Positions 15,947 through 48,285 of a DNA stretch of 64,000 nt are shown here, piece by piece. Both the position numbers and the translations under genes were made by a program. The notes under the pieces were generated by a model. It did no database searches, was not told the DNA's origin, and saw only the letters and a program-made list of their open reading frames with translations. The stretch's first letter is position 1; each line of letters starts with the position of its first letter. This DNA comes from Podarcis bocagei (taxonomy: Eukaryota), in the NCBI GenBank assembly GCA_964188305.1, contig OZ076886.1. One strand, 5' to 3'.

Positions 15947-16311
15947 GTAAGTATGGCAAGCCTATTCAGATGACCAAGCAGCAGAAACTGCGATGCGGGC
16001 TAGTTCATTTCTGTGATGACAGCCACCCTTATTAAGGCAGGGGTGGGAAACCTGTGGCCTTCTGGATGTGGTGGAACTTCAACGCTCATCACTCCCAGCC
16101 AGGAGGGAAAGTAGCCAGAGATGATGGGGGTCGTGGTCCAACAATAACTGGAGAGTTACATGTTCCCCATCCCTACTCTAAGGGATGTGTTCACCATTGG
16201 GGCAGGCAAAGCACTTCATATAATGCAAGACCTTTTAAAATTCTCAAACCGAGAGAGATATTCAACTGTTTTAATCAGAGTAGATCCATTGAAATTAATG
16301 GACATGGTTGA

Positions 16312-16441
16312 NNNNNNNNNNNNNNNNNNNNNNNNNNNNNNNNNNNNNNNNNNNNNNNNNNNNNNNNNNNNNNNNNNNNNNNNNNNNNNNNNNNNNNNNN
16401 NNNNNNNNNNNNNNNNNNNNNNNNNNNNNNNNNNNNNNNNN
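16312..16441. other. Assembly gap (130 N)
   Basis: Run of N in RNF157 intron 15. Confidence 0.99.
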
Positions 16442-17035
16442 CCAGGGGGTTTCAGAGCAGTTCACAGAATAAAATAAAAGTTCTACTCTGGGTAAAACTT
16501 AGTTGAATACCACCTAGTTTTTTTAAAAAAGTTATTCAAGCCATTTCAGCTATTGGGTGGAACCCAGTGATTATATGGCACACTTAACATCCAAGATGGC
16601 AGCAGACACACAGCATTGTAGGTTGTGGCTAAGCAGCCATTGCCTGGGTGTGGCAGAAATGGACCAATATGGCGGCCAGGTGCAGTGCTTTTTTTCTGGG
16701 GGGGATGCAGACCCCTAAACATTTTGTGAATCTTCCTACTTTTGTCCATTTACTGTATTTATTTTCCCCGATTTGTACTATAAAATGGTGGTTTTCTTGA
16801 GTCAAAATGAGAGTACCCCTAAACATTTTTTTAGGAAAAAAAAAGCACTGGCCAGGTGTACCTTGTTGCAAAAACTCATTTGAGAAGAGGTGGGAAGCCA
16901 GCGAGACTTTTAAAAATTCAGAACATGTGTTGGGGTTGATACCACTGATGCAATTTGCCAGTGATTGTAACCTGCCTCTACAGGAAATGCACCAGTAAGT
17001 CCAAGTCCTGCCCTTTTCCCTTTCTCTTCCCTTAG

Positions 17036-18506: not shown

Positions 18507-18683
18507 TTCATTTGATCAAGCCAATTTCAGGTTTCCTCTGTGGAGAAAATATATAGGAGAATGCTTCTCTTGACACCCTTTTAAGGAGGGAACCAAGCTC
18601 TGATAACTGAGCTTTTGTGTCATCCTCTGTGTATTGCAAGTCCTTCACTTTTAACATTTGCACCTTGTCATCTTTTGTGGCAG

Positions 18684-18732
18684 GGGAATGACGTCATGGA
18701 GGAAGAGGCTGGCTCCCCCACACAAGAAGATG
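18684..18732 (+). CDS. RNF157: RNF157 exon 17 (GNDVMEEEAGSPTQED)
   Basis: gcag acceptor, G|gtaaca donor, 49 nt. Confidence 0.9.
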
Positions 18733-21700
18733 GTAACAGAGAACAGACCATTACTCCTTTCCCCATATTTTTTGGCTATGTTCCATCCCATCCAGCTGGC
18801 AGTGTTCACAGTGGCGGATAAGGAAAAGCAAGGCTGAGCGGGGGTGGGACTTCTGGACAAGCTCAGCCTTGTTTATCTTGTAGTAGCAGATGGATGGTCT
18901 AAAGAGTTTGGAGGTGTTGGGGGGGAGTTGTAATATAAAGCTACTTGATGGCTTTCCCTGTATATTGTGGGTTTATGTGTTTCCGAGGTCTAGTTTTTGC
19001 AAAGTAGTGTAAAACAGCTTTCAGAAGTTTCAGTAATGTCGCTTACAAGTGAAATTACAAAAATGTTGCAAGGTTAGAGACATAAATGAAAAGTCTTCAG
19101 TTTCAAAATGCCAGCGTCCCTTACTAAAGCAATAGCAATTCCAAACACTTCTCTGGAAAACGGAGCGGGGAGGGAAGGATGAAGCCGAGAGCAATCTTCA
19201 GATAGCTGGAGCATCTTTGGCAATGCCCATAGCAGTGGATGTTCTGGTGCAAAATTGCAAAACTGAGGGGGGAAATCTTCACTGTTGCAGATAATGACCT
19301 ACTAGGTTCAGTCTTTAGCTACTTAGAGGGCTATAGACACCAGAACTTTGCAGCAGCAAAGCATAGGTCAATACAAATCATCACGTTTTGGAAGCTAGGT
19401 CATGGGCCGCTGACATAGGGACCCTGATGGAAAACTGCTCCCCCAAAAGTAAGGGATCTGTGACACTCCCATAACCCCAGGTGACGACACACCTCTTTGA
19501 TACTTTTGGAAGATGCTGCGACAAGCTCTCACTGTGATGGGAAGAGAAGCCAGGTAAAATGGGCTTCCTCTCCTTATTTGGTGTGTTTGGCTGATTAAAA
19601 ATCAACCTGCTTTGTAAAACTTCATAATGAACATTCTTAAGTGTTTCCATACATAACCCCCCCCCAAGTAAAATAGCATTTAGTTGACTCGTGGACTTTC
19701 CTTGTGAACTCTGAGCATCTCATTTTTAAAAGGCAAGTTTCAGGTGCTCATGGTCAGCAGCAAGGAGACGAGCTCGAAAATGCCGCAACCGCATGCTTAA
19801 TAATTGGAAGGTTAAAGCAAAACTTAAACCCACATGCGTGTTATGATTCTGGAAGTTGACACCCACAAAGCATATGCATAGTGAACATGCAATTTCAATG
19901 GAACATGCCAATTAGCCTCAGGTTTCTGCCTCCTGGTATGCTTGCAGAATGTTTCATGATGCTGTGTTTTTGCTAACATTTGAGGGTTAACTTAAAAGCT
20001 GCAGCAGGAGCTGGGCCAAGTTTGCCCATAACTGGAGCAAATTGTAACTCCGTTAAACTCTGTGGCATGCCACTGGTTCTGGGTGATGGGGAGGGTGACA
20101 GATCGTGTGATCTTTTTCTCTTCCGTGCGCGACACTTCTCACACCCTCAGTAAGCACCAACAAGGCAGAGAACCCATTCTTAAATAGCAGTATAATGGCA
20201 GTGTTCACCAAAACCTGGTGGCTTTTCCGTGGGTCAGCAGGTGCCATTCCCTTTTCCCCCTCCAATGGCTGGGGCTTCTGCTTTAGTGCCAGCTGCGCTT
20301 CTGGGATTCCAGTGGGGTTGCATGCTTGCCTCGTACAGCAGTCGTGCAGCACAATACTTCAACACATGCCCAGCAGCCCACTCCATAAACCAGCCATGCT
20401 GGAGTACTTGGCTGTGCATCAGTTTTGCTTCTTAGCATGTCAACCAAAGCGGCTTTGAGGGATTCTGTCACCATAAAGACTTACTTTATTTTGAAGCTTG
20501 AAATAGCAGAAGGCCTTCTAAATAGCACTCTTATTTAGACGTCCAGGAATGCTCTTCTGGTGTTCTTAGGACTTGCGAGTTTTTGCACACTTGCGCGTCC
20601 AACCAGCAGGGAGTCCAGAGTAGGATGGATAGTCTGTGTGGTTGATTAAGTAAAGAACAACCCACATTATTGTGTGGAATACTTTTCTTTCAGGGCTTCA
20701 GAGAGTTGTTACAGAAAGATTTTTTTTAAACATAGTCTTCTGCTCCAGCCCCCAAAACCACTTGTCCAGAAAACAATTGAAAAGGTTTCCTCTTGCAAGG
20801 TCTTTCGCTTTTTAAAAAAACCAAATGGCAAAATTTCTATTAACTTTTCCGGAATTAATATATGGAAGTTCTGTAAATTTCTTCCTTTACCACATAGATA
20901 TTTCTGTCTCTTTTAAAAACAAAACAAAAAACAAAATAGTACCCACACAGTCTAAATTTAATCTGGAATATTGCAAGGAAAAATAATGAATAAGCCTAAG
21001 GGCTTTTGTAGGGTAGGGAGAGGGGTATAGCCAGATATTGTTAAAACAGATGTCATTGTTGGTTAGGTTGGGGCATTTTCAGAAGTAATGCATCACTCAG
21101 TGTCCTGAGAGCTTCAGGTAAAAGAAGATGCCCCCATTTAAACAGACATTTGACTCAGTTTAGCCTTCTCATTCAATTGTTAAAAATGAAAACTCACCAC
21201 AGTAATTATGTGTGAGCACCTCTTAGAATATTACTGGAGAAACCTGAAAAAGGTAGTCTAAGGCAATCACAGTTTTGGCTTTCCAACATTAAGCTGTGTC
21301 AAAGCAAACAAATCTGTGCTACAGACCTTTCTGTATCTGTTTTATACCAGTGCAAGGCATCATTCAAGGAATCCTGGGAACTGTCGTTCTTGTGAAGGGG
21401 CTAGGAATTCTCTTAGAAATCCCTAGCACTCACTCAACAGAACAGGAAACGGGAAGTCATTGAGCTCCAGGTGACATTGTGGAACTCCAACTCCCATCAG
21501 CCCCAGCCAGCATGGCCAGTGGTCTGGGACTATGAGAGATGCGAGTCCAGGAACATCGGGAGGCCATCAATTTCCCCACCCCTGTCACAAAGAACTACCA
21601 TTCCCAGAGCTACCCGAAGAGAAGGATATGTCCAATGGTGCTTATTTGCGATACAAAATTAATAGTGCTTAATTTTTGCAACCAACTGAGGTTCCTGTTG

Positions 21701-22155: not shown

Positions 22156-22266
22156 GCCAAAGGACAGGCGCATACCTAGGTATGGAGTGTGACAATAACA
22201 ATGACATTGGCAACGCAAGCGTGAAAGCACTGGACAATAAGCTGTGCTCTGAGGCCTGCTTACCTG
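22156..22266 (+). CDS. RNF157: RNF157 exon 18 (GQRTGAYLGMECDNNNDIGNASVKALDNKLCSEACLP)
   Basis: acag acceptor, G|gtgagt donor, 111 nt, symmetric phase 1. Confidence 0.93.
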
Positions 22267-25110
22267 GTGAGTGGCAGTCTGCTGAACATGAACTTTTGTG
22301 GGTGTGTGGAGGTGGGAGGGGAGCCTCTTACATACCCCCCACCCCACCCTGTCACCAGCAGCCAGAACGTAACACTTGCATGTACATATACTTCACGTTG
22401 AAACAGGCAAAAATACAGGTGCTCAGCTATGGCATCTTCCAAATATTTTAAACCATGCCCACTTACCTCCCCTGACCAGCCCTGCGTTGCACCACAATAT
22501 AGAGATCTTTTTTTAGGTTTCCTAACTTAAGGCAAGTTTTTAATATGGCTTTCTCCACTGACCCCTGGGAACCAAAACTCCCTGAGGGTGTGGAAACATC
22601 TTTGTCGGAGTTCCTAGCCCATAAGACACGGGAGCCACATTTAATTCCATGTGTAGCGTGGTGCCCACTCTTATTTCTTACTGAATATTTCCATCCCCTT
22701 CTTTCTCCTTCTGTGTCCTACTCTCTCCGCCTCCACATTTTTTCCTCATCTTTAAAACTTTTTGAAGCCAAGGGGGGAAAAGAAATGTCAGCACTGCTGG
22801 TGCAGCCCACTTTGGGTTGGGTTGTAACCCACCTGGGTGTCCTCATCCACCTGTTGAGAACCAGCGCCCAAGATCCTTCAGCCATGGCAGTGAAAGCCAT
22901 TTTAGGTGTACAGTTTAGATATGTTCACATACACCTGGCATAAGAAATAGGGTTAAGTTTTAAAGTTGAGCCCAAGACTCAGCGTGCAGAGTTCTTCTTG
23001 ACAAGATTAATAGTGGCAGGATAAATTGTCAGCTCCTAGATAGGCTTATAGAAGTCAAAGCATTGGTTAGATCTGTTGGGTACAGAAGGAACCACACTTG
23101 TTCCATGATATCTAATTTAGTGACTCCATGGAAAAGATGCTCTATTGGGGGACTTCTTCCTGCACTAAAATAAGATCCAGCCGTCACCCCCAATCTCATT
23201 CTATTTCTAAGCAATATGTAAAAGTCCTTCAGATTTAATTATTTTCTTTACACATAGCTAGCCTGGTTAGTAACATAACGAAAAAGCATGTTTGAGACAT
23301 GTTTAATAATTCCTTGGCTTAGCCCTGGTATCACATTCCCCACCTTACTTTTTGTTACTAACCCCGGGTATGCCTTGTGTGTCTCTTTGCTGTTTCATTG
23401 ATCTTTTTGCCCCACTGGGTTTCATCAGTGTGAAAGTTCATGTTCACTCTACGCCAGCAAATTTCTTGTTTTTCTTTTCTTAGCCCATGCTTCCACCCTT
23501 TCCATTTCTCTGGGTTGCTGAAATGGCTGTAAATTTTACTGACTGACCTTTAAGGGTCTGGACAAAACTGAATAGGGGGGAATAGAATCATGCATTATAG
23601 TTGAGCAAATTGGCCTTGCCTGGTCCAGGATTAATGAAAATTAAAGATTTGTTGGTTTTTATTTCCAATGAATGGAAACCATGGGCACAATTCTGTGCCG
23701 GTTCATTGAAATATAAGGGTCTTGTGCACCTCTGCCCTGGATGGATTGCATTCGTGTGTCCCACCCAGAGAGGACTTGGAACACTTACCTAGTGTGTGTT
23801 TTAATTTCTGTTTATTTTAATAGGATTTAAGTGTTCCTAACCTCTTCTGGCTTATGCCCCAAATCTTTAAAATGCAGGTGCATCAGACTCGTCCTCCCAT
23901 GTCAGTAAATTTGTTGTCATTTGTAACACCATAGCAACCCATCTCTTGCTTATTTTGCCTTTCGCTAAAGCTTTCAAGGCTGTAAACTTGAGATACCTGA
24001 AAGAATCTTTCTTGGTTGGTCTAATTCACTGCTTCGGAGAGGGAGAGCTTTCTCACATAGCTGCTAGCAAGCTAGCTCTCTTCCTCTGTTGTGCTGTCCC
24101 TCTGTGTAATTTATTTCACTTGGGAAATTCTGCAGTTAATCCAAGCTTTGCTCTGCAAAAGCATATGTGCCCGCAGATAAGAGACCCTCTAACAATAGTG
24201 GCAAATGCCATCTTTCTTCTGGGGCAGGAATTGTTTGAACACAGCCACATGCAAGGTCATTTATAGTTCCGAGGTTAAAATATTGCACCATATTATGTCC
24301 TTGCAGTGTTGGTACCTTCAAGCAATCATGGCTCTGTGTATAAGCCCAGACCCGAGCAAAATCTTAACCAAATGCCTTGCTAAGTACAATTTAGTGCGTA
24401 TCCATAACCCTTCAAATTGTGATCTTTTAAACTGGGAAATCCTGCTTCAGTCAAGCAAGCTATTAGAGGGCAGTAAAATAAATCACTGGAACATTTTTTT
24501 CAGGGGTCTTAAAATGGCTATTGGGCAGTGAGGAACCAGAGAACAGAGGCTGACACATGCAACCCATCTTATTCAATAAAGTCACCAGTATGGATATAAT
24601 AATGTCCTTGAATTTCTTGAAAACTGCATACCTGGTGTAGTGGATAAGTGTTCCAAATATAGCATCAGGTATCAGAACAGTGGTTGCAGTTCTATCAGAA
24701 GAACAAGAAGTGGGGAGGAGGAATGACATGTTGCGCAACATATTTCACAGCTGAGCTATTTAAAGCTGCCTAGACCCTGTGAAATAGCAGGCTTGTCAAT
24801 GAGTTTTTGAATAAGGAAAGAAAAAAACAGTAGCTTAATATACTGTGCAATATGGTGCAAATTGGTAAAAAAAAAAAAGGCTTTGTAATGCATCTCTGTG
24901 CTTTTAAAGTGAACAACAGTGTGCATTAATGACAGCATGTGAACTATCATGCAAAATATTACTTTTAGCAAATCCTCCCTCTTCCCGCCCCCCAAAAAGT
25001 CCATCATTGCAGATAAATCTCCATAACATTTGATGTCAGGTTTTTTTGTTTGTTTTACTTTTAGGAAAGCAAAACTTTCTCATATTTAAAGGCCTATATT
25101 ATGGCAGTTA

Positions 25111-25477
25111 GGGGACACGGGTGGCGCTGTGGGTTAAACCACAGAGCCTAGGACCTGCCGATCGAAAGGTCGGCGGTTCGAATCCCCACGGCGGGGTGAG
25201 CTCCCGTCGTTTGGTCCCAGCTCCTGCCTACCTAGCAGTTCGAAAGCACCACTAAGTGCAAGTAGATAAATAGAGACCGCTTTCTAGTGGGAAGGTAAAC
25301 GGCGTTTCTGTGTGCGGCGCTGGTGGTGGCTCGCCAGATGCAGCTTCGTCACGTTGGCCACGTGACCCGGAAGTGTCTTCGGACAGCGCCGGCCTCTTGA
25401 GCGAGATGAGCGCGCAACCCTAGAGTCGGTCACGACTGGCCCTGATGGGCAGGGGTACCTTTACCTTTTACCTTTTT
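25111..25477 (+). mobile_element. Full-length Sauria SINE
   Basis: GGGACACGGGTGGCGCTGTGG head, GGTTCGAATCC B box, ACCTTT tail, TSD core TATGGCAGT on both sides. Confidence 0.9.
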
Positions 25478-28400
25478 ACTATGGCAGTAGTTAATGAGTT
25501 AGCTACCGACCAACTTAATGTAGCAGTGTCTCTTATTCTTCCTGTCTCTTATTTCATCACATAACTGCAGCAGTGGGAGAGCATTATGAGATATTTCTCT
25601 AAATGTGTTGTAGTGGAACTTACTCCCTAGCATACTTGGTTGTAGAAAAGCTTCCAAACCCAGAACCTTGGCTAAATTCAAGAATTGCTTTAGATGAAAG
25701 ATCACATCTTTATCACATCCCAGCTGTTATCTGCATAGACATAGGAAGTATTCCCTAGCATTGCCTGCAGTGCTTCTTGAACTGCAGGAGTGGAAGCTGG
25801 GCATCAGGAGACCTGTGGAATAAATTACTATACAGTCACCAGAGGTGTCATCGCCTCCTCTGGCTTGCATACCTTTTGCTGCTTGCAGGAATCTTTTGCA
25901 GATCCCCCACCCTTCACTCTATGCAACAGACGAAGCCAAGTCCTCTTTTTCCCCTAGCTGCAGTGTGTTATTGTGCAAACCCATGCTTTGCTTTGCAGCC
26001 AGTCAGGAAGCAGCATGTACCTGCTTCCATGGTGCACAAGCTATATATGTAAAGCAGAATGGGGAATGAGACTTTTTGAGTTGCCTATTCGCAGATGCTG
26101 TGCCCTTGAGCTTTTTGGTATATGGCTGGAGTAATGCTGTGCCTGGCTGATCTAATGGCAGGGGTGCATTTCTGAAGTTGTCCTCTTGTTTCCCTCACAC
26201 TCCATTTCCTTCACCCCAAAGTTTGAACTCCTAAAAACAAAACAAAAAAGCACTTCTAGGTACTCCACTTCAGTTTATCTGAGGAGGGCAATCCCGCCCC
26301 AGCTTAGTCTCTTTGTTTTAAGGATTTTTAGTCTCTGGGTTCTCTCCCCCTTTTTAAAGAGTGAATAGGTACAAAGGTAAGTACGGGAGATGGAAAAGCA
26401 AAGTATTAATTTTGAATCTGCAATAGTTGGCTTAGGGCTTGTCCGCACTGGGTTTTAATGTGGGTTTGTAGCTGTTTGTGTTCCCAATTGATTTGCATAT
26501 AGTGCACATGACATTGCCCTCACACACACCAGTCTTGATGCTTTTCCCTTATAAATTTTGGCTTATTCGACTTAGCCATCTATGTATATATGTATTCTTT
26601 AGATCACTCAAGATTTGCACAAACCAAAAAACTGCACAAGCAAATTTACTATTGTTTAAGTACTTTTGCACACTTCTTGGGCGGGGAATACATATATAAC
26701 GAAGTGGACACACAGCTATCTGTGCACATGCTCTGTCAGCACTTAATTCGCATGATAGAACCAACAAATTAGAAGGCAGGGACAAACGCAAAAGGGAATG
26801 CCTACTGATGTGGTTAATAGCCAGATGTAGTGGCCCAGTTGTGGGACTAAATAATTCTCAGATGTTGATAAAAACAACATAAGAGATGCAGAAGAGAATA
26901 AAGACCACTTCTTTCAGGTGTACATGCCAGAGAGCAAAATACAGAAATGGTGTCAAATACTGTTGCATGTTTCCCTTCTAAATATCATGTGTATATGGGA
27001 AGTGGAAGGCAGCAAACCAGTCCATGCATGTATTATTTGTTATTCAAAAATCTCTGTTTTGTGTTTCCCAAGTAGCAAAAAAAAATAAAAATGGTACAAA
27101 CAGGGCCTTTAATTGGCAACTGGGCAAGTGGTAATTCACTCAAACAGCTTGATGAGCATGGCTAGCTGGCAATGATCATGTTGGCCCATCTCAAGGGATT
27201 GTGCTGCAGCTATCACAGGGCCAAATAGTGTTCCTTTGGCACCCAGTAATAGGTAAATGTTTATAGTTTGTTGTGTGTCTCCAGCTACGCATTTTGCTCT
27301 GCTGAGATAGTCTCCCAGCTACAAGCAGAATACTCAGGGGGAATTGTTTATTGAGCTCTTAACATGGATACCCCTGAGCCATTGTTAACAGGGTATATGC
27401 ACATCTGGTGTATTCTAGAGGCTACACTACACAACTGTGCTTTCCAGTTATGGCCAGACAGATCTTAGCTGTTGCTTCTTTCTGTGTTAATCCATAATGC
27501 TAATTGAAACTGCCCTATGTTTAAACATGAAGGTCCAAGAATGTGGGGCACAGGATAGCTTACACTTCTTGCTTCTTTTTAGGTTCCGTGCAAAAGTCAA
27601 AGTGTAGCGACCTTAAATCTTGGATGGCAACACTTTGGTCTTGCAATTTGTTTTCCCAACATTAATGTAAGCTGCTTTGGGAATCCCTTTTGAACATAGG
27701 GCATAGATTTTACTACTAAATGAATAATGCTGGGGTCTCATGGAAAGCTAAGAGTAGGTCTTCCATGCATCAACCGTACCACCTAACATTTAGCCCAGAG
27801 AAAAGTTAGCTTGGCCCATTCAAAATGCTATGTCCCATGTCTGCCTTTGGGGGCTATGTCTGATGGATTGTGCCCCCCCCCCCGCAATCTGCTGCCAATT
27901 CTGTGCTATAGAATGTATAACAATGTTATATTGTGACATCATTGGCCATGCAAGAGGCAGGGAATCTCTCTGGAATTGTTGGCTCTCCTCTTAGCATGCT
28001 TTACGGGTTTAATGGCCTAGCTTGCCACCAAACTGTGGTCTGGACCAACAATATCTATGATGGATGTGAGCTGTTTTACAGGGGTAGAGCTCAAATTGAG
28101 TTGGGCTGCAAGGATTAGCTTGCTGCAGCACCGTTCTAGAGCGTCCAGCCCTCTCTTGAACATCCATTAATCAAGGGCCCCTGCTTCCCATCCCATCTGC
28201 TTTAGAAATGTTTCTGTGGAATAAAACAGCCTTTGGATTAAACCTATGCTCTGTCCCATGCTTCTTGTAGACACCTTGGGTTGGGTTCCATCCCTTTGTG
28301 ATAGGCTACTCACAGTAACCAAGACTTGCTTGGAAATTGCCACTGACTTGGAACACAATTCCTAAGAGTTTCAGCACACAGGCTTCTATGTCAAATCTGC

Positions 28401-28570
28401 TAGGTTGGCATTAGGGATTACAACGTAGAAGATAGTTTTTGTTTTGTCCCTTTTTGTGCTCTCTCTCTTTCTCTTTCTCTTTCTCTCTCTCTCCGTTGCA
28501 TGCATTTGCATTTGTGTTGTCTGTCCTTTCTCTTGTTCACCATTTGCTTCTGGTCTTTCCTACTAAACAG

Positions 28571-28611
28571 CTGCAGTTCCGGAATCCTGCCCCATAAGCA
28601 TTGAGGAATAG
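28571..28611 (+). CDS. RNF157: RNF157 alternative 41-nt cassette exon giving a short C-terminus (AAVPESCPISIEE*)
   Basis: ~130-nt pyrimidine tract, aacag acceptor, in phase with exon 18, ends TAG|gtatga. Peptide resembles the MGRN1 alternative C-terminus ALGPDSCSVGIDE as I recall it. Confidence 0.75.
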
Positions 28612-29169
28612 GTATGAGATTTGCGAAGTCCTCTGCTGCTCACTTCGTCTGAATAAACCTAGATTTCATTTTGCAGTATAATCTTTCTCTCTAAGGCTTT
28701 GTTTGATCAAACAGTCCCCACCCCCTACACACTTTTTTTGAAAAAAGGAAGGATTGCCTCTTGCGCATGAAATATTGGCAGGGGCAAGTGATACTTAATC
28801 ACTTCTTGAACCAAAACACAAGTGCATAATGGGCTTTCTTAACTCATTGGTTTAAATGACTTTTAAAAGCCAAGCTACAGAATCTGAGGCTGCAATCTTA
28901 CACATGCTTACCTAGAAGTAATTGCCATTGAACCCCGTGAAACTGACTTTTGAGCAGACATGCACAAGATTACACTGTAAGGCAAACCATGTGCATCTAT
29001 TCATGACCAATAGAACTGTGCCCGGGTGCATTTTTCTGTTTCTAGCCATGTACTGGTTACCCAGGCTATTTCATGTTCAGGGACTAAGTCCACAAATGTT
29101 ACGAAGGGTGTAGTGGGATGGATTTTAGTTTACATGTACTGGGGCAATTATTACCCACCACAACTCTTG

Positions 29170-29420
29170 ACTCTCTTTTGCCATAGGATAGGCTGCTAAA
29201 AAATACAGGTTCCAGTACCAATCCTTGGGGGATTCCACCTTCTACATCCCTCCATCCCTGCTCTCTACTTCCTGTTTCTTGATCCACAACAGGACCTCTC
29301 TGATTCCATGACAGCTAAGCTTACTCGGGAGCTTTTGGTGAGGTAGCTTGTCTAAAGCTGCTTGAAAGTCCAAGTGCACAATATCAACCAGATTCCCTCT
29401 CTGTTATATCTATCTATTAA
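29170..29420 (-). mobile_element. Degenerate CR1 LINE reverse-transcriptase fragment
   Basis: Minus strand encodes VDIVHLDFQAALDKLPHQKL and WRDVEGGIPQGLVLEPVFF, decayed versions of the CR1 RT motifs YLDFxKAFDKVPH and SGVPQGSVLGP. Confidence 0.8.
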
Positions 29421-31004
29421 TCTGACTACAGAAATATATTCACTGTTTTTGTCTTGTGCGCTCAACCACTTTGATTAGCAAATGCCCATAAAATGTTTCC
29501 TTCGCAAGAGTGCAAAAAGACTAACGCTGCTGAATTGACTAAATTTGACTATTCAAAAGGTTGCTGTGAACAATGAACTTTCATTCCTTGTGCTATCACA
29601 TCACAATTAACTTTACATTTCAGCAAGGGCCCATTCCCGAATGAAGGGGGAGTTCTCATACTTCAAAGATTAAGTCCAGGAGGGAGGGAGATAACCGTTG
29701 CTGGATATTTGGTTTCTATATAATAGTTGCACTTTCTCTCTGCGCAGCAATGATTTCCTAATGAAATCCCTGCAAAGTGTATGAGATTTAGAGCTGTTTT
29801 GCAGGAGTTAATTGCCTCATTTAGCATATAACTATGCTGTAGGCTGGCAAGTGGTTTTCTTTCTTTTTTTTGTTTAGTACAAATATAATGCCTTGGGGTC
29901 AAATTAAAGCACATGAAAGATGTACTTAGTTGCTTCCTGTAGTAAATGAAAATCCCAGCTTATAACTTATGGCATTTCTTGGCTGTAGGCTCCATAGATG
30001 CCAAATAATTAAAATGTCTACTTTTTATTCACTGCATCAAAGATGAGAATATAAATAGCTGCGCTGTGCCCAGGGCGGCTATTTTCATACTTGGGCTATA
30101 GCTAAACTAAGATAAGTTAGAGTTATAGGGAATGATGTACAGCACTCTGTTAAAATGGTCCTGTTATGTTATCACCTTCCTAAGTCTGTCCGTCTGTGAT
30201 CACAGAACACAGGCCTGGGCCAATAGGGCTGTTCTTACGGAATGGAAGGTATCAGAATGTTCTTAGAATGAAGAGCCTCACGGGCAATTCCTTTTACTAA
30301 ATCCAGCAACCATTTGAAGATATTCTCACAGTGTGAGGCTGCTAAGTTTAGGAAGGGACCTAAGATACTTCCAGACACCATCTGCCTGTGCTTATATGGA
30401 AGACATTTGTGGGCATGCTTTGTGTACTTGGAGAAACTTTCATTTTGTTTGAAACCACAGCAGCTTCCATATTCACACTTGTATGGGTAACCTGTCAAAC
30501 CTGCAGTGAAGATACTACAAACAGCTAGTTATGTTGGCTGGCTTGTCCAATTTTTCATGATCACCTGGAGGACCTAAGAGCATGATAAGTTTCCTTTTCT
30601 TTAAATGGATGGTTAAAGTGGTAGAAGAAATTATGACAAACCTCCATTAATATATTTTAAGTGCAGGTAGGAAAAGGTAAATGTTTTTAAAAAATAAAAT
30701 AAAAATTAGTTTTACCGAAATTCAGATATACCTTGTAACAAATGTCAGTGTTACAGAATGAACCCAGGGCTCGATGAAGACCTAAAATGAGTTCTGTAAA
30801 AACTGCCACCCCTAGTTATTGACCGTTATGAAGAACCAGTCTTTCAGTACTCTTGCCAGAGTCTGTAGACCACTACATCTATTACTTGCCTAAATTTTAA
30901 AGCACAAACCTCTTGTTTTTCCATTCTTTGGCGCTGGTATTCTGCTTCCTATTATCCCGCTAAGCTCTCGCCAATAGTATTATCCATTACTTTTCTTCTC
31001 ATAG

Positions 31005-31135
31005 GTATCCAGGCGTCAGCTGACAATCTTCTGAATCACAGCCAGACCCTGAGGCGCCACTTTTCTGCCAGCAGCATCAACCTGGAGTACGATGAAGATT
31101 TGCAATGCATGCTGGGACTTCTGTGCCCTCGATGA
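31005..31135 (+). CDS. RNF157: RNF157 last coding exon (GIQASADNLLNHSQTLRRHFSASSINLEYDEDLQCMLGLLCPR*)
   Basis: ttttcttctcatag acceptor, in phase with exon 18, stop TGA at 31133-31135; resembles the mammalian ADN...RRRLSSSSLE tail. Confidence 0.85.
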
Positions 31136-39739: not shown

Positions 39740-40261
39740 ATGTTGGACTTGCCTGTTTTGGCTTCCCCTGACATGACTGACAGCTGGCTGAACGTGCAGT
39801 CTGAAGAAGAGAAAGGCCAGGAAAGCAGCATGGCGGATTCAAGCAACCTGGACGACAGCTTGACCAGCCTACAGTGGCTTCAAGAATTCTCCATCATCAA
39901 CGCCAACATGGGCAAGGCAAGCTCTTCCCCTTGCAGCACAGATCCTCACGGCTATCACAAGATCCCTGGCTCTGCTGCACCATGTTCCCCTCTAGCTGGT
40001 GACCCGGCTTGCATGGGGATGCCCCATACCCCTGGCAAGCCAATCTCCTCTTCCACATCCAGGACTGCACACCTGCAAGGCCAGCCATTGGAAGACATAG
40101 ATTACAAGACTAATCCCCATGTAAAGCCTCCTTACTCCTATGCCACGCTCATCTGCATGGCGATGGAAGCAAGCAAGAAAACCAAAATCACCCTCTCAGA
40201 CATCTATAAATGGATTACAGATAATTTCTGCTATTTCCGCCATGCAGACCCCACATGGCAG
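39740..40261 (+). CDS. FOXJ1: FOXJ1 first coding exon (174 codons; LDDSLTSLQWL motif and N-half of forkhead domain)
   Basis: ORF 39740 contains DYKTNPHVKPPYSYATLICMAM...NFCYFRHADPTWQ, then CAG|gtaggt donor. Confidence 0.97.
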
Positions 40262-40643
40262 GTAGGTGCCTAGGATGGGACAGCCCATACCTCTCTGCAT
40301 TTTGGCTACCCAGTCATGTGGGTGAGGTTATAGCGCACTTGCTACTGTCTCCATGTTTTCTGTTGGCTATCCACTGCAGTTCATGACCAGCCATCCTCCC
40401 AAATCAGCCTTGATGCTTCTGTGACTTGCATTATGTGACAGTGAAACTGTTTCACCACTATTTAAATTCTCATGATTTCCATGTGAGGCAAGTGTTGTGT
40501 ACACCTAATATGCTGATGAAGGAAATCTAAACTACTTGACCAGAATCCTTAAAAATGGCCATGCTTAGAGCAGCAAACAGCTCCCTACATTCTTAACACA
40601 CAACACAGTCCTAATCATGTCCATATAGAATTTGATGGGACTT

Positions 40644-47466: not shown

Positions 47467-48285
47467 AACTCCATTAGGCACAACCTGTCCTTGAACAAGT
47501 GCTTCATCAAGGTGCCACGAGAGAAGGACGAACCAGGGAAAGGTGGATTCTGGAAGATCGACCCCCAGTATGCAGACAGGCTGATGAACGGAGCGTTCAA
47601 GAAGCGCAGGATGCCCCCCGTGCAAATCCACCCAGCTTTCACCGGAAGACTCCAGCAGGATGCTGGCTCCAGTTCATTGGCTCACCAGGCGGTGGCATCT
47701 TGGAAAAACAACAGCATCCTGAAAATCAACATGGAGTCTCAGCAGCTGCTCAAAGAGTTTGAAGAAGCCACCGGCGACCAGAACTGGAACCCGGCAGATG
47801 GGAAAATGAGCCATAAACGCAAGCAGCCACTCCCCAAGCGAATGTGCAAGACAGCCCGTCTCTCCAGCTCCCCCCTGCTTACTCAGGAAGAGCAGACAGA
47901 GCTTGGGTCTCTGAAAGGTGACTTTGACTGGGAAGCTATCTTCGACACCACCTTAAATGGTGACTTCTCCACCTTCGAGGATCTGGAGATCACTCCTCCT
48001 ATCAGCCCAATAACCAGGGATGTAGACTTGACTGTGCATGGAAGACATATTGACTGCCCACAGGAGTGGTGCCCTGCCGGGCAGGATTACATCCTAACCG
48101 AATCCAACCAGAACAGCTTGGACTTTGACGAGACCTTCATTGCCACTTCTTTCCTCCAGCATCCCTGGGATGAAGGGAGAAACGATTACCTCTCGAGTTC
48201 TGTCAACATAGACCCGCTCTTTGAACTCAACGATCCTTCATTGCAGACGGAAATGAATGACTGGAGCAATGCTGGGTGTCTTTAA
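47467..48285 (+). CDS. FOXJ1: FOXJ1 last coding exon ([29 protein letters not shown]...[11 protein letters not shown]...; total protein 446 aa)
   Basis: tttcag acceptor, phase 0, completes the forkhead domain; stop TAA at 48283-48285. Confidence 0.97.

Follow-up and report, generated by a model that had tools for sequence, protein, structure and literature searches.

RNF157 is the vertebrate paralogue of MGRN1, a single co-orthologue being found elsewhere (PMC13161197; PMC5582827). The C-terminal isoforms of MGRN1 have been ascribed to alternative splicing of 'exon 17' (PMC7599452), and human RNF157 has a Ser660-663 cluster through which CDH1 binding and degradation of the protein are promoted (PMC5582827). 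The tail carrying this cluster was presented as eutherian-only in the text of the latter study, and as degenerate or absent in non-mammalian vertebrates in its supplement; the word 'isoform' does not occur in that paper, nor is loss of the degradation-control tail discussed there (PMC5582827). A literature search found no paper on RNF157 splicing. Short C-terminal tails of RNF157 are present in public annotation, in Lacerta agilis (X4) and Tiliqua scincoides (X1/X2), and also in Sphaerodactylus (X1-X5), Apteryx (X3/X4), Monodelphis (X3) and Desmodus (X3). For comparison there is also a class of exons in which the branch point is distant and the AG exclusion zone long; many of these are repressed by polypyrimidine-tract-binding proteins.

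We analysed a Podarcis window of 64,000 nt (the whole stretch of DNA under study), which contains the 3' two-thirds of one RNF157 gene on the + strand, with a FOXJ1-like gene downstream. The RNF157 exon translations of the window matched Podarcis muralis X1 (P0363) almost perfectly, and a read-through model of the same species differed from the window by one residue, so this Podarcis DNA may come from a species other than P. muralis. The last RNF157 intron (22267-31004) spans 8738 nt and contains no N. A run of N is found at about 16310-16450, inside an RNF157 intron. The features on which the following paragraphs draw are:

18681-18732, + strand: RNF157 exon ending ...SPTQED G/ (phase 1), with a donor GT at 18733
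22156-22266, + strand: 111-nt penultimate exon of constitutive type, QRTGAYLGMECDNNND...CSEACLP G/, with a phase-1 end (...CCT G/gtgagt)
22267-22300, + strand: conserved start of the last intron, read through as GEWQSAEHEL
28436-28568, + strand: AG-free pyrimidine-rich zone with CT repeats and TGCATG at 28497, upstream of the acceptor
28571-28611, + strand: 41-nt alternative exon encoding a short C-terminal tail, preceded by the acceptor ...aacAG/
28612-28617, + strand: donor GTATGA of the alternative exon, directly 3' of it
28652-28657, + strand: AATAAA lying 41 nt past the exon end, which may act as an intronic poly(A) signal
31005-31135, + strand: protein-coding portion of the last exon, with the long tail GIQASADN...RRHFSASS...LLCPR and its stop at 31133-31135
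39740-40273 and 47491-48285, + strand: forkhead-domain ORFs of the FOXJ1-like gene, downstream of RNF157

Joined to the phase-1 G of the upstream exon, the 41-nt segment encodes a 13-residue tail, AAVPESCPISIEE, followed by a stop codon (28609-28611) that forms the final 3 nt of the exon. An in-frame acceptor is also available 6 nt within the exon, at an inner CAG whose last base is 28576. The original prediction had described exactly this anatomy, with 41 nt between AG and GT, a flush stop and an inner acceptor, and each element was found in place. Use of the inner acceptor in amniotes is unsupported, as no listed short-tail protein has a tail two residues shorter. The exon had also been called hidden. 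It is indeed absent from the list of open reading frames; the rest of that claim did not stand, because the exon is already known, being listed by the annotation pipelines of dozens of vertebrates and present in public annotation of many of them, including the sister genus Lacerta.

On a rough splice-site score, the neighbouring constitutive exons had stronger donor and acceptor sites than the 41-nt exon, which was also outscored by five other AG...GT pairs of the 8738-nt intron. Since this score gives the exon no special rank, splice-site strength was dropped as evidence for it. What sets the exon apart from chance is its identity to annotated exons of other species.

Two upstream partners are available to the short-tail exon. 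In Lacerta agilis X4 (P0357), ...SPTQED is joined directly to the short tail, which makes exon 18681-18732 an alternative partner; the 111-nt exon 22156-22266 is skipped in this model as well as in Podarcis muralis X5 (P0232) and in several gecko, anole and snake models. The last base of either upstream exon is a phase-1 G, so the frame is held with or without the 111-nt exon. Two choices at each of two exons make four C-terminal combinations possible. The last exon was present as previously described, beginning at 31005 and carrying the RRHFSASS serine cluster, and its peptide was identical to the ends of Podarcis muralis X1, X2 and X5 (P0363, P0270, P0232). The last intron, too, is conserved over its first ~30 nt: the read-through GEWQSAEHEL is identical in Podarcis, Lacerta, Tiliqua and hamster, and the teleost reads GEWQPLEHGL. 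This conserved stretch (22267-22300) is either an intronic splicing element or a third, intron-retention C-terminus. Read-through tails end several database models, among them those of turtles, tuatara, rodents and dog.

The distribution of the short tail was followed in protein databases. With the RING exon as sole query, a library of representatives yielded a pig model of RNF157 and, ending ...YLPALGPDSCSVGIEE, a fragment of pangolin MGRN1; database proteins were then used in word searches and the C-termini tabulated, the queries being single exons and database proteins. A tail of the form ...[DE]SCPIxI[DE][DE] ended 33 of the 189 listed RNF157 proteins, with a close variant in one turtle protein besides. 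These 33 came from a skink, geckos, vipers, colubrids, ratites, galliforms, passerines, marsupials, bats, a mole, a tenrec, a macaque and a hamster. Further members of the short-tail cluster were Lacerta agilis X4 (XP_032995288.1), Paroedura, Heteronotia, Gekko, Anolis sagrei and Sceloporus, together with the snakes Thamnophis, Candoia and Pituophis. The consensus of the tail in RNF157 is A-x-x-P-[DE]-S-C-P-I-x-I-E-E. The proposal that the segment is a coding exon was thereby borne out: the window tail is identical to those of the RefSeq isoforms Lacerta agilis X4 (P0357) and Tiliqua X1/X2, P0237 and P0238 being among the identical tails, and differences of 1-3 residues are seen in the other annotated short tails. 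In Lacerta X4 and Tiliqua X1/X2 the exon has the same last-intron position, the same 41 nt, the flush stop and the GTATGA donor, and we found no structural difference between the annotated short-tail exons and that of the window. The Podarcis muralis models compared (X1, X2 and X5; X3 and X4 fell outside the comparison) all had the long tail and included no short-tail isoform.

Vipera latastei RNF157 isoform 4-T6 (P0307) ends ...DNKLQLRNPVP. This tail is what the short-tail exon encodes when it is read in another frame, the model having used an alternative donor within the 111-nt exon, so that here too the exon is seen to be spliced in.

The RNF157 loci of Lacerta, Tiliqua, grouse and Chinese hamster were then compared at the DNA level. 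All four contained a 41-nt exon that follows an AG, ends in TAG and is succeeded by GTATGA:

L001, 63634-63674: orthologous 41-nt exon
L002, 84682-84722: orthologous 41-nt exon
L003, 16914-16954: orthologous 41-nt exon
L004, 28746-28786: orthologous 41-nt exon
L006, 12442-12476: last-intron counterpart of the exon in a teleost RNF157 locus (GCA_900700375.2), 35 nt long and unannotated

In phase from the upstream G/, the teleost exon encodes DGDSCPVHIEE and a stop. Its 35 nt equal the length of the amniote exon measured from the inner acceptor. The end of the exon and the GTATGAGAT donor region are the same as in lizards, an AG-free CU-rich stretch of 229 nt lies upstream, and the annotated product of the teleost gene has the long tail only. 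The GTATGA donor is thus invariant in Podarcis, Lacerta, Tiliqua, grouse, hamster and teleost. Conservation among sauropsids, and retention in mammals, had been proposed as a check on the exon; it was found in the DNA of lizards, grouse and hamster, and short tails were found in both sauropsid and mammalian proteins. On these sequence comparisons, 28571-28611 is best explained as the lizard orthologue of an old penultimate RNF157 exon that is subject to alternative splicing, a reading to which we assign a probability of about 0.9.

MGRN1 was described in the original prediction as having an alternative end similar to the short tail, and this proved correct. The MGRN1 short tail ALGPDSCSVGIEE, ending ...DIYLPALGPDSCSVGIEE, was found in 26 of the 120 listed mammalian MGRN1 proteins, a tally that took in one human-labelled entry (P0484); most of the other 94 continue ...DIYLPGWSTS...TPL. 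The mammalian alternatives thus part at one junction, LP/A...SCSVGIEE versus LP/G.... Two of the short-tail entries (P0371, P0380) derive from contigs 2-3 kb long that had been assembled from sequencing runs. In the Chinese pangolin, the exon was located in the last intron of MGRN1:

L005, up to 38254: upstream exon, ending ...CCA G/gtaaca
L005, 40380-40424: short-tail exon
L005, from ~41986: last exon

The pangolin exon consists of an acceptor AG, 13 codons, a stop and 4 nt, and is followed by GTATGT. Aligning CLP/AAVPESCPISIEE of RNF157 with YLP/ALGPDSCSVGIEE of MGRN1 gave 7 identical residues in 13, and 2 conservative ones. The two genes have in common the LP/ junction, phase 1, the last-intron position and the 13-residue tail, and pangolin MGRN1 likewise has a GTATG donor after its short-tail exon. 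Both paralogues share the motif P-[DE]-S-C-x-[IV]-x-I-E-E, which is also retained from fish to mammals. They differ in that the pangolin MGRN1 exon is 45 nt long, with its stop 4 nt before the donor, whereas that of RNF157 is 41 nt with a flush stop, and in the AG-free stretch upstream, which is 22 nt in pangolin MGRN1 but 67-229 nt in RNF157. The long tails of the two proteins are dissimilar in mammals. Because MGRN1 has a homologous switch, the choice between tails very probably predates the split of MGRN1 and RNF157, as had been proposed; with junction, phase, position and 7/13 residues shared, inheritance from the pre-duplication gene is the parsimonious reading.

We next consider how inclusion of the exon might be controlled. 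The original prediction had pointed to a CU tract and a TGCATG upstream of the acceptor, and both are there. Pyrimidines make up 82.5% of the tract 28441-28560, and the + strand of the 64 kb has just one other 120-nt stretch like it; the AG-free zone as a whole is 81-82% pyrimidine and contains UCUCU and UCUU. Only two AG-free gaps of the window are longer than the one at 28434-28569 (135 nt), namely the run of N and a gap of 140 nt at 1384-1524, in an upstream RNF157 intron. A long AG-free stretch precedes the short-tail exon in all six RNF157 loci (133, 117, 85, 67, 85 and 229 nt). An alignment of Podarcis, Lacerta, Tiliqua, grouse and hamster showed the proximal ~45 nt of the upstream intron to be conserved between lizards, bird and mammal. 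The CT-repeat stretch is confined to the two lacertids, Podarcis and Lacerta, and is 16 nt shorter in Lacerta; the Podarcis tract is the longest among the species compared, between which CT-repeat content varies widely.

That the exon is regulated is indicated by its weak splice sites together with a long AG-free zone and intron flanks that are both conserved, and the long AG-free zone would place the branch point at a distance. Exons repressed by PTB combine an extended CU-rich tract, UCUU and CUCUCU motifs and a long AG exclusion zone. The window shows all of these and, like the PTB-repressed exons with distant branch points, has its pyrimidine zone (133 nt, AG-free) before a weak acceptor. 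The likeness is that of a candidate recognised from sequence, and CT-repeat content is not conserved among RNF157 loci. A polypyrimidine-tract-binding repressor of the 41-nt exon is thus plausible, at somewhat less than even odds.

The case for RBFOX, which rested on the TGCATG at 28497, fared worse. The hexamer is confined to the lacertids Podarcis and Lacerta; Tiliqua has TGTATG, and in the 200 nt that precede the grouse, hamster and teleost exons no TGCATG was found. Its count is at chance level, with 36 copies in the window and 4 in the last intron. As (U)GCAUG near the exon is not conserved across species, we rejected regulation by RBFOX as a supported claim, and consider it decidedly improbable that RBFOX regulates the 41-nt exon.

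We propose the following course for inclusion. Exon 22156-22266 (or, if the 111-nt exon is skipped, the exon ending at 18732) would be spliced to 28571-28611, adding 13 residues, and translation would stop at the last three bases of the exon. The GTATGA donor would then be spliced to the last exon at 31005, which would be left untranslated.

The AATAAA at 28652-28657 offers another way to the same short-tail protein. The exon could serve as an alternative terminal exon, with cleavage and polyadenylation after this signal, either alone or beside the cassette mode. The signal lies 41 nt past the exon, and both it and some 80 nt of downstream intron are conserved in Podarcis, Lacerta and Tiliqua. 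However, AATAAA occurs about every 1.5 kb on the + strand, so that one within 100 nt is only mildly unusual, and it is missing at the corresponding place in grouse and hamster. In addition, GTATGA would hardly be invariant from teleost to mammal if the donor were neither used nor bound. We regard the terminal-exon mode as unlikely on these grounds, and splicing of the 41-nt exon to 31005 as the preferred course.

The fate of the spliced mRNA bears on a further alternative. With inclusion, the distance from the stop to the last exon junction is 0 nt. Under the 50-55 nt rule, a stop this close upstream of the last exon-exon junction escapes nonsense-mediated decay, and as the stop lies directly at that junction, the mRNA should escape it too. 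The product would then be a stable short-tail isoform and not a poison product. A poison exon, whose inclusion introduces a premature stop, triggers decay and lowers RNF157 output, the peptide being irrelevant, would share several features with the present one: it is short, has an in-frame stop and weak splice sites, and is flanked by conserved intron. Yet the stop is flush with the last junction, inside the escape window; the peptide motif is common to the paralogues and retained from fish to mammals; and the frame is kept even in isoforms that skip the 111-nt exon. All three argue against such a role, which appears very unlikely. Finally, the idea that 28571-28611 is a chance AG...GT pseudo-exon, functionless in Podarcis, could appeal to the five pairs of the same intron with stronger rough splice scores, but it is effectively refuted by the comparative data (a tail identical to the annotated Lacerta agilis exon, an orthologous 41-nt exon there, and conservation in bird, mammal and teleost DNA) and carries next to no weight.

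The consequence of including the 41-nt cassette exon concerns the end of the protein. The short isoform would lack the 43-residue long tail, which bears an R-R-x-x-S-x-S-S cluster. The window RRHFSASS aligns with human RRLSSSS (Ser660-663). Clusters similar to RRHFSASS, of the form H-x-S-S-S-S, are seen in turtles, alligator, other lizards and marsupials. Through loss of the Ser660-663-like cluster, the short form should be less subject to CDH1 control, and the switch probably toggles RNF157 between CDH1-controlled and CDH1-insensitive forms, as judged from the human long-tail experiments. The eutherian-only view of the tail (PMC5582827) may have come from comparing short-tail or truncated models of other species.

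Going beyond this, we advance a broader model only tentatively, well below even odds. The short tail would be a conserved short linear motif at the extreme C-terminus, retained by both paralogues from a time before they diverged, and in RNF157 the switch would be regulated, probably in neurons, so that removal of the CDH1-binding phospho-cluster would stabilise the ligase through the cell cycle.

For annotation, these data mean that the Podarcis locus carries the short-tail exon, and a model with this exon belongs in the gene set. The isoform is in public annotation and its MGRN1 counterpart is in the literature, and no long-standing question is opened by it. What makes it of interest is how deeply the exon is conserved and that the degradation-control tail would be lost: the exon is old, extending from teleost to mammal and common to MGRN1, and its inclusion would remove the one region of RNF157 for which control of the protein's degradation has been shown. 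As functional studies of RNF157 have so far used the long form, such studies should state which isoform is expressed. If true, the CDH1-insensitive switch would be a layer of control unconsidered by the RNF157 literature, which treats a single isoform.
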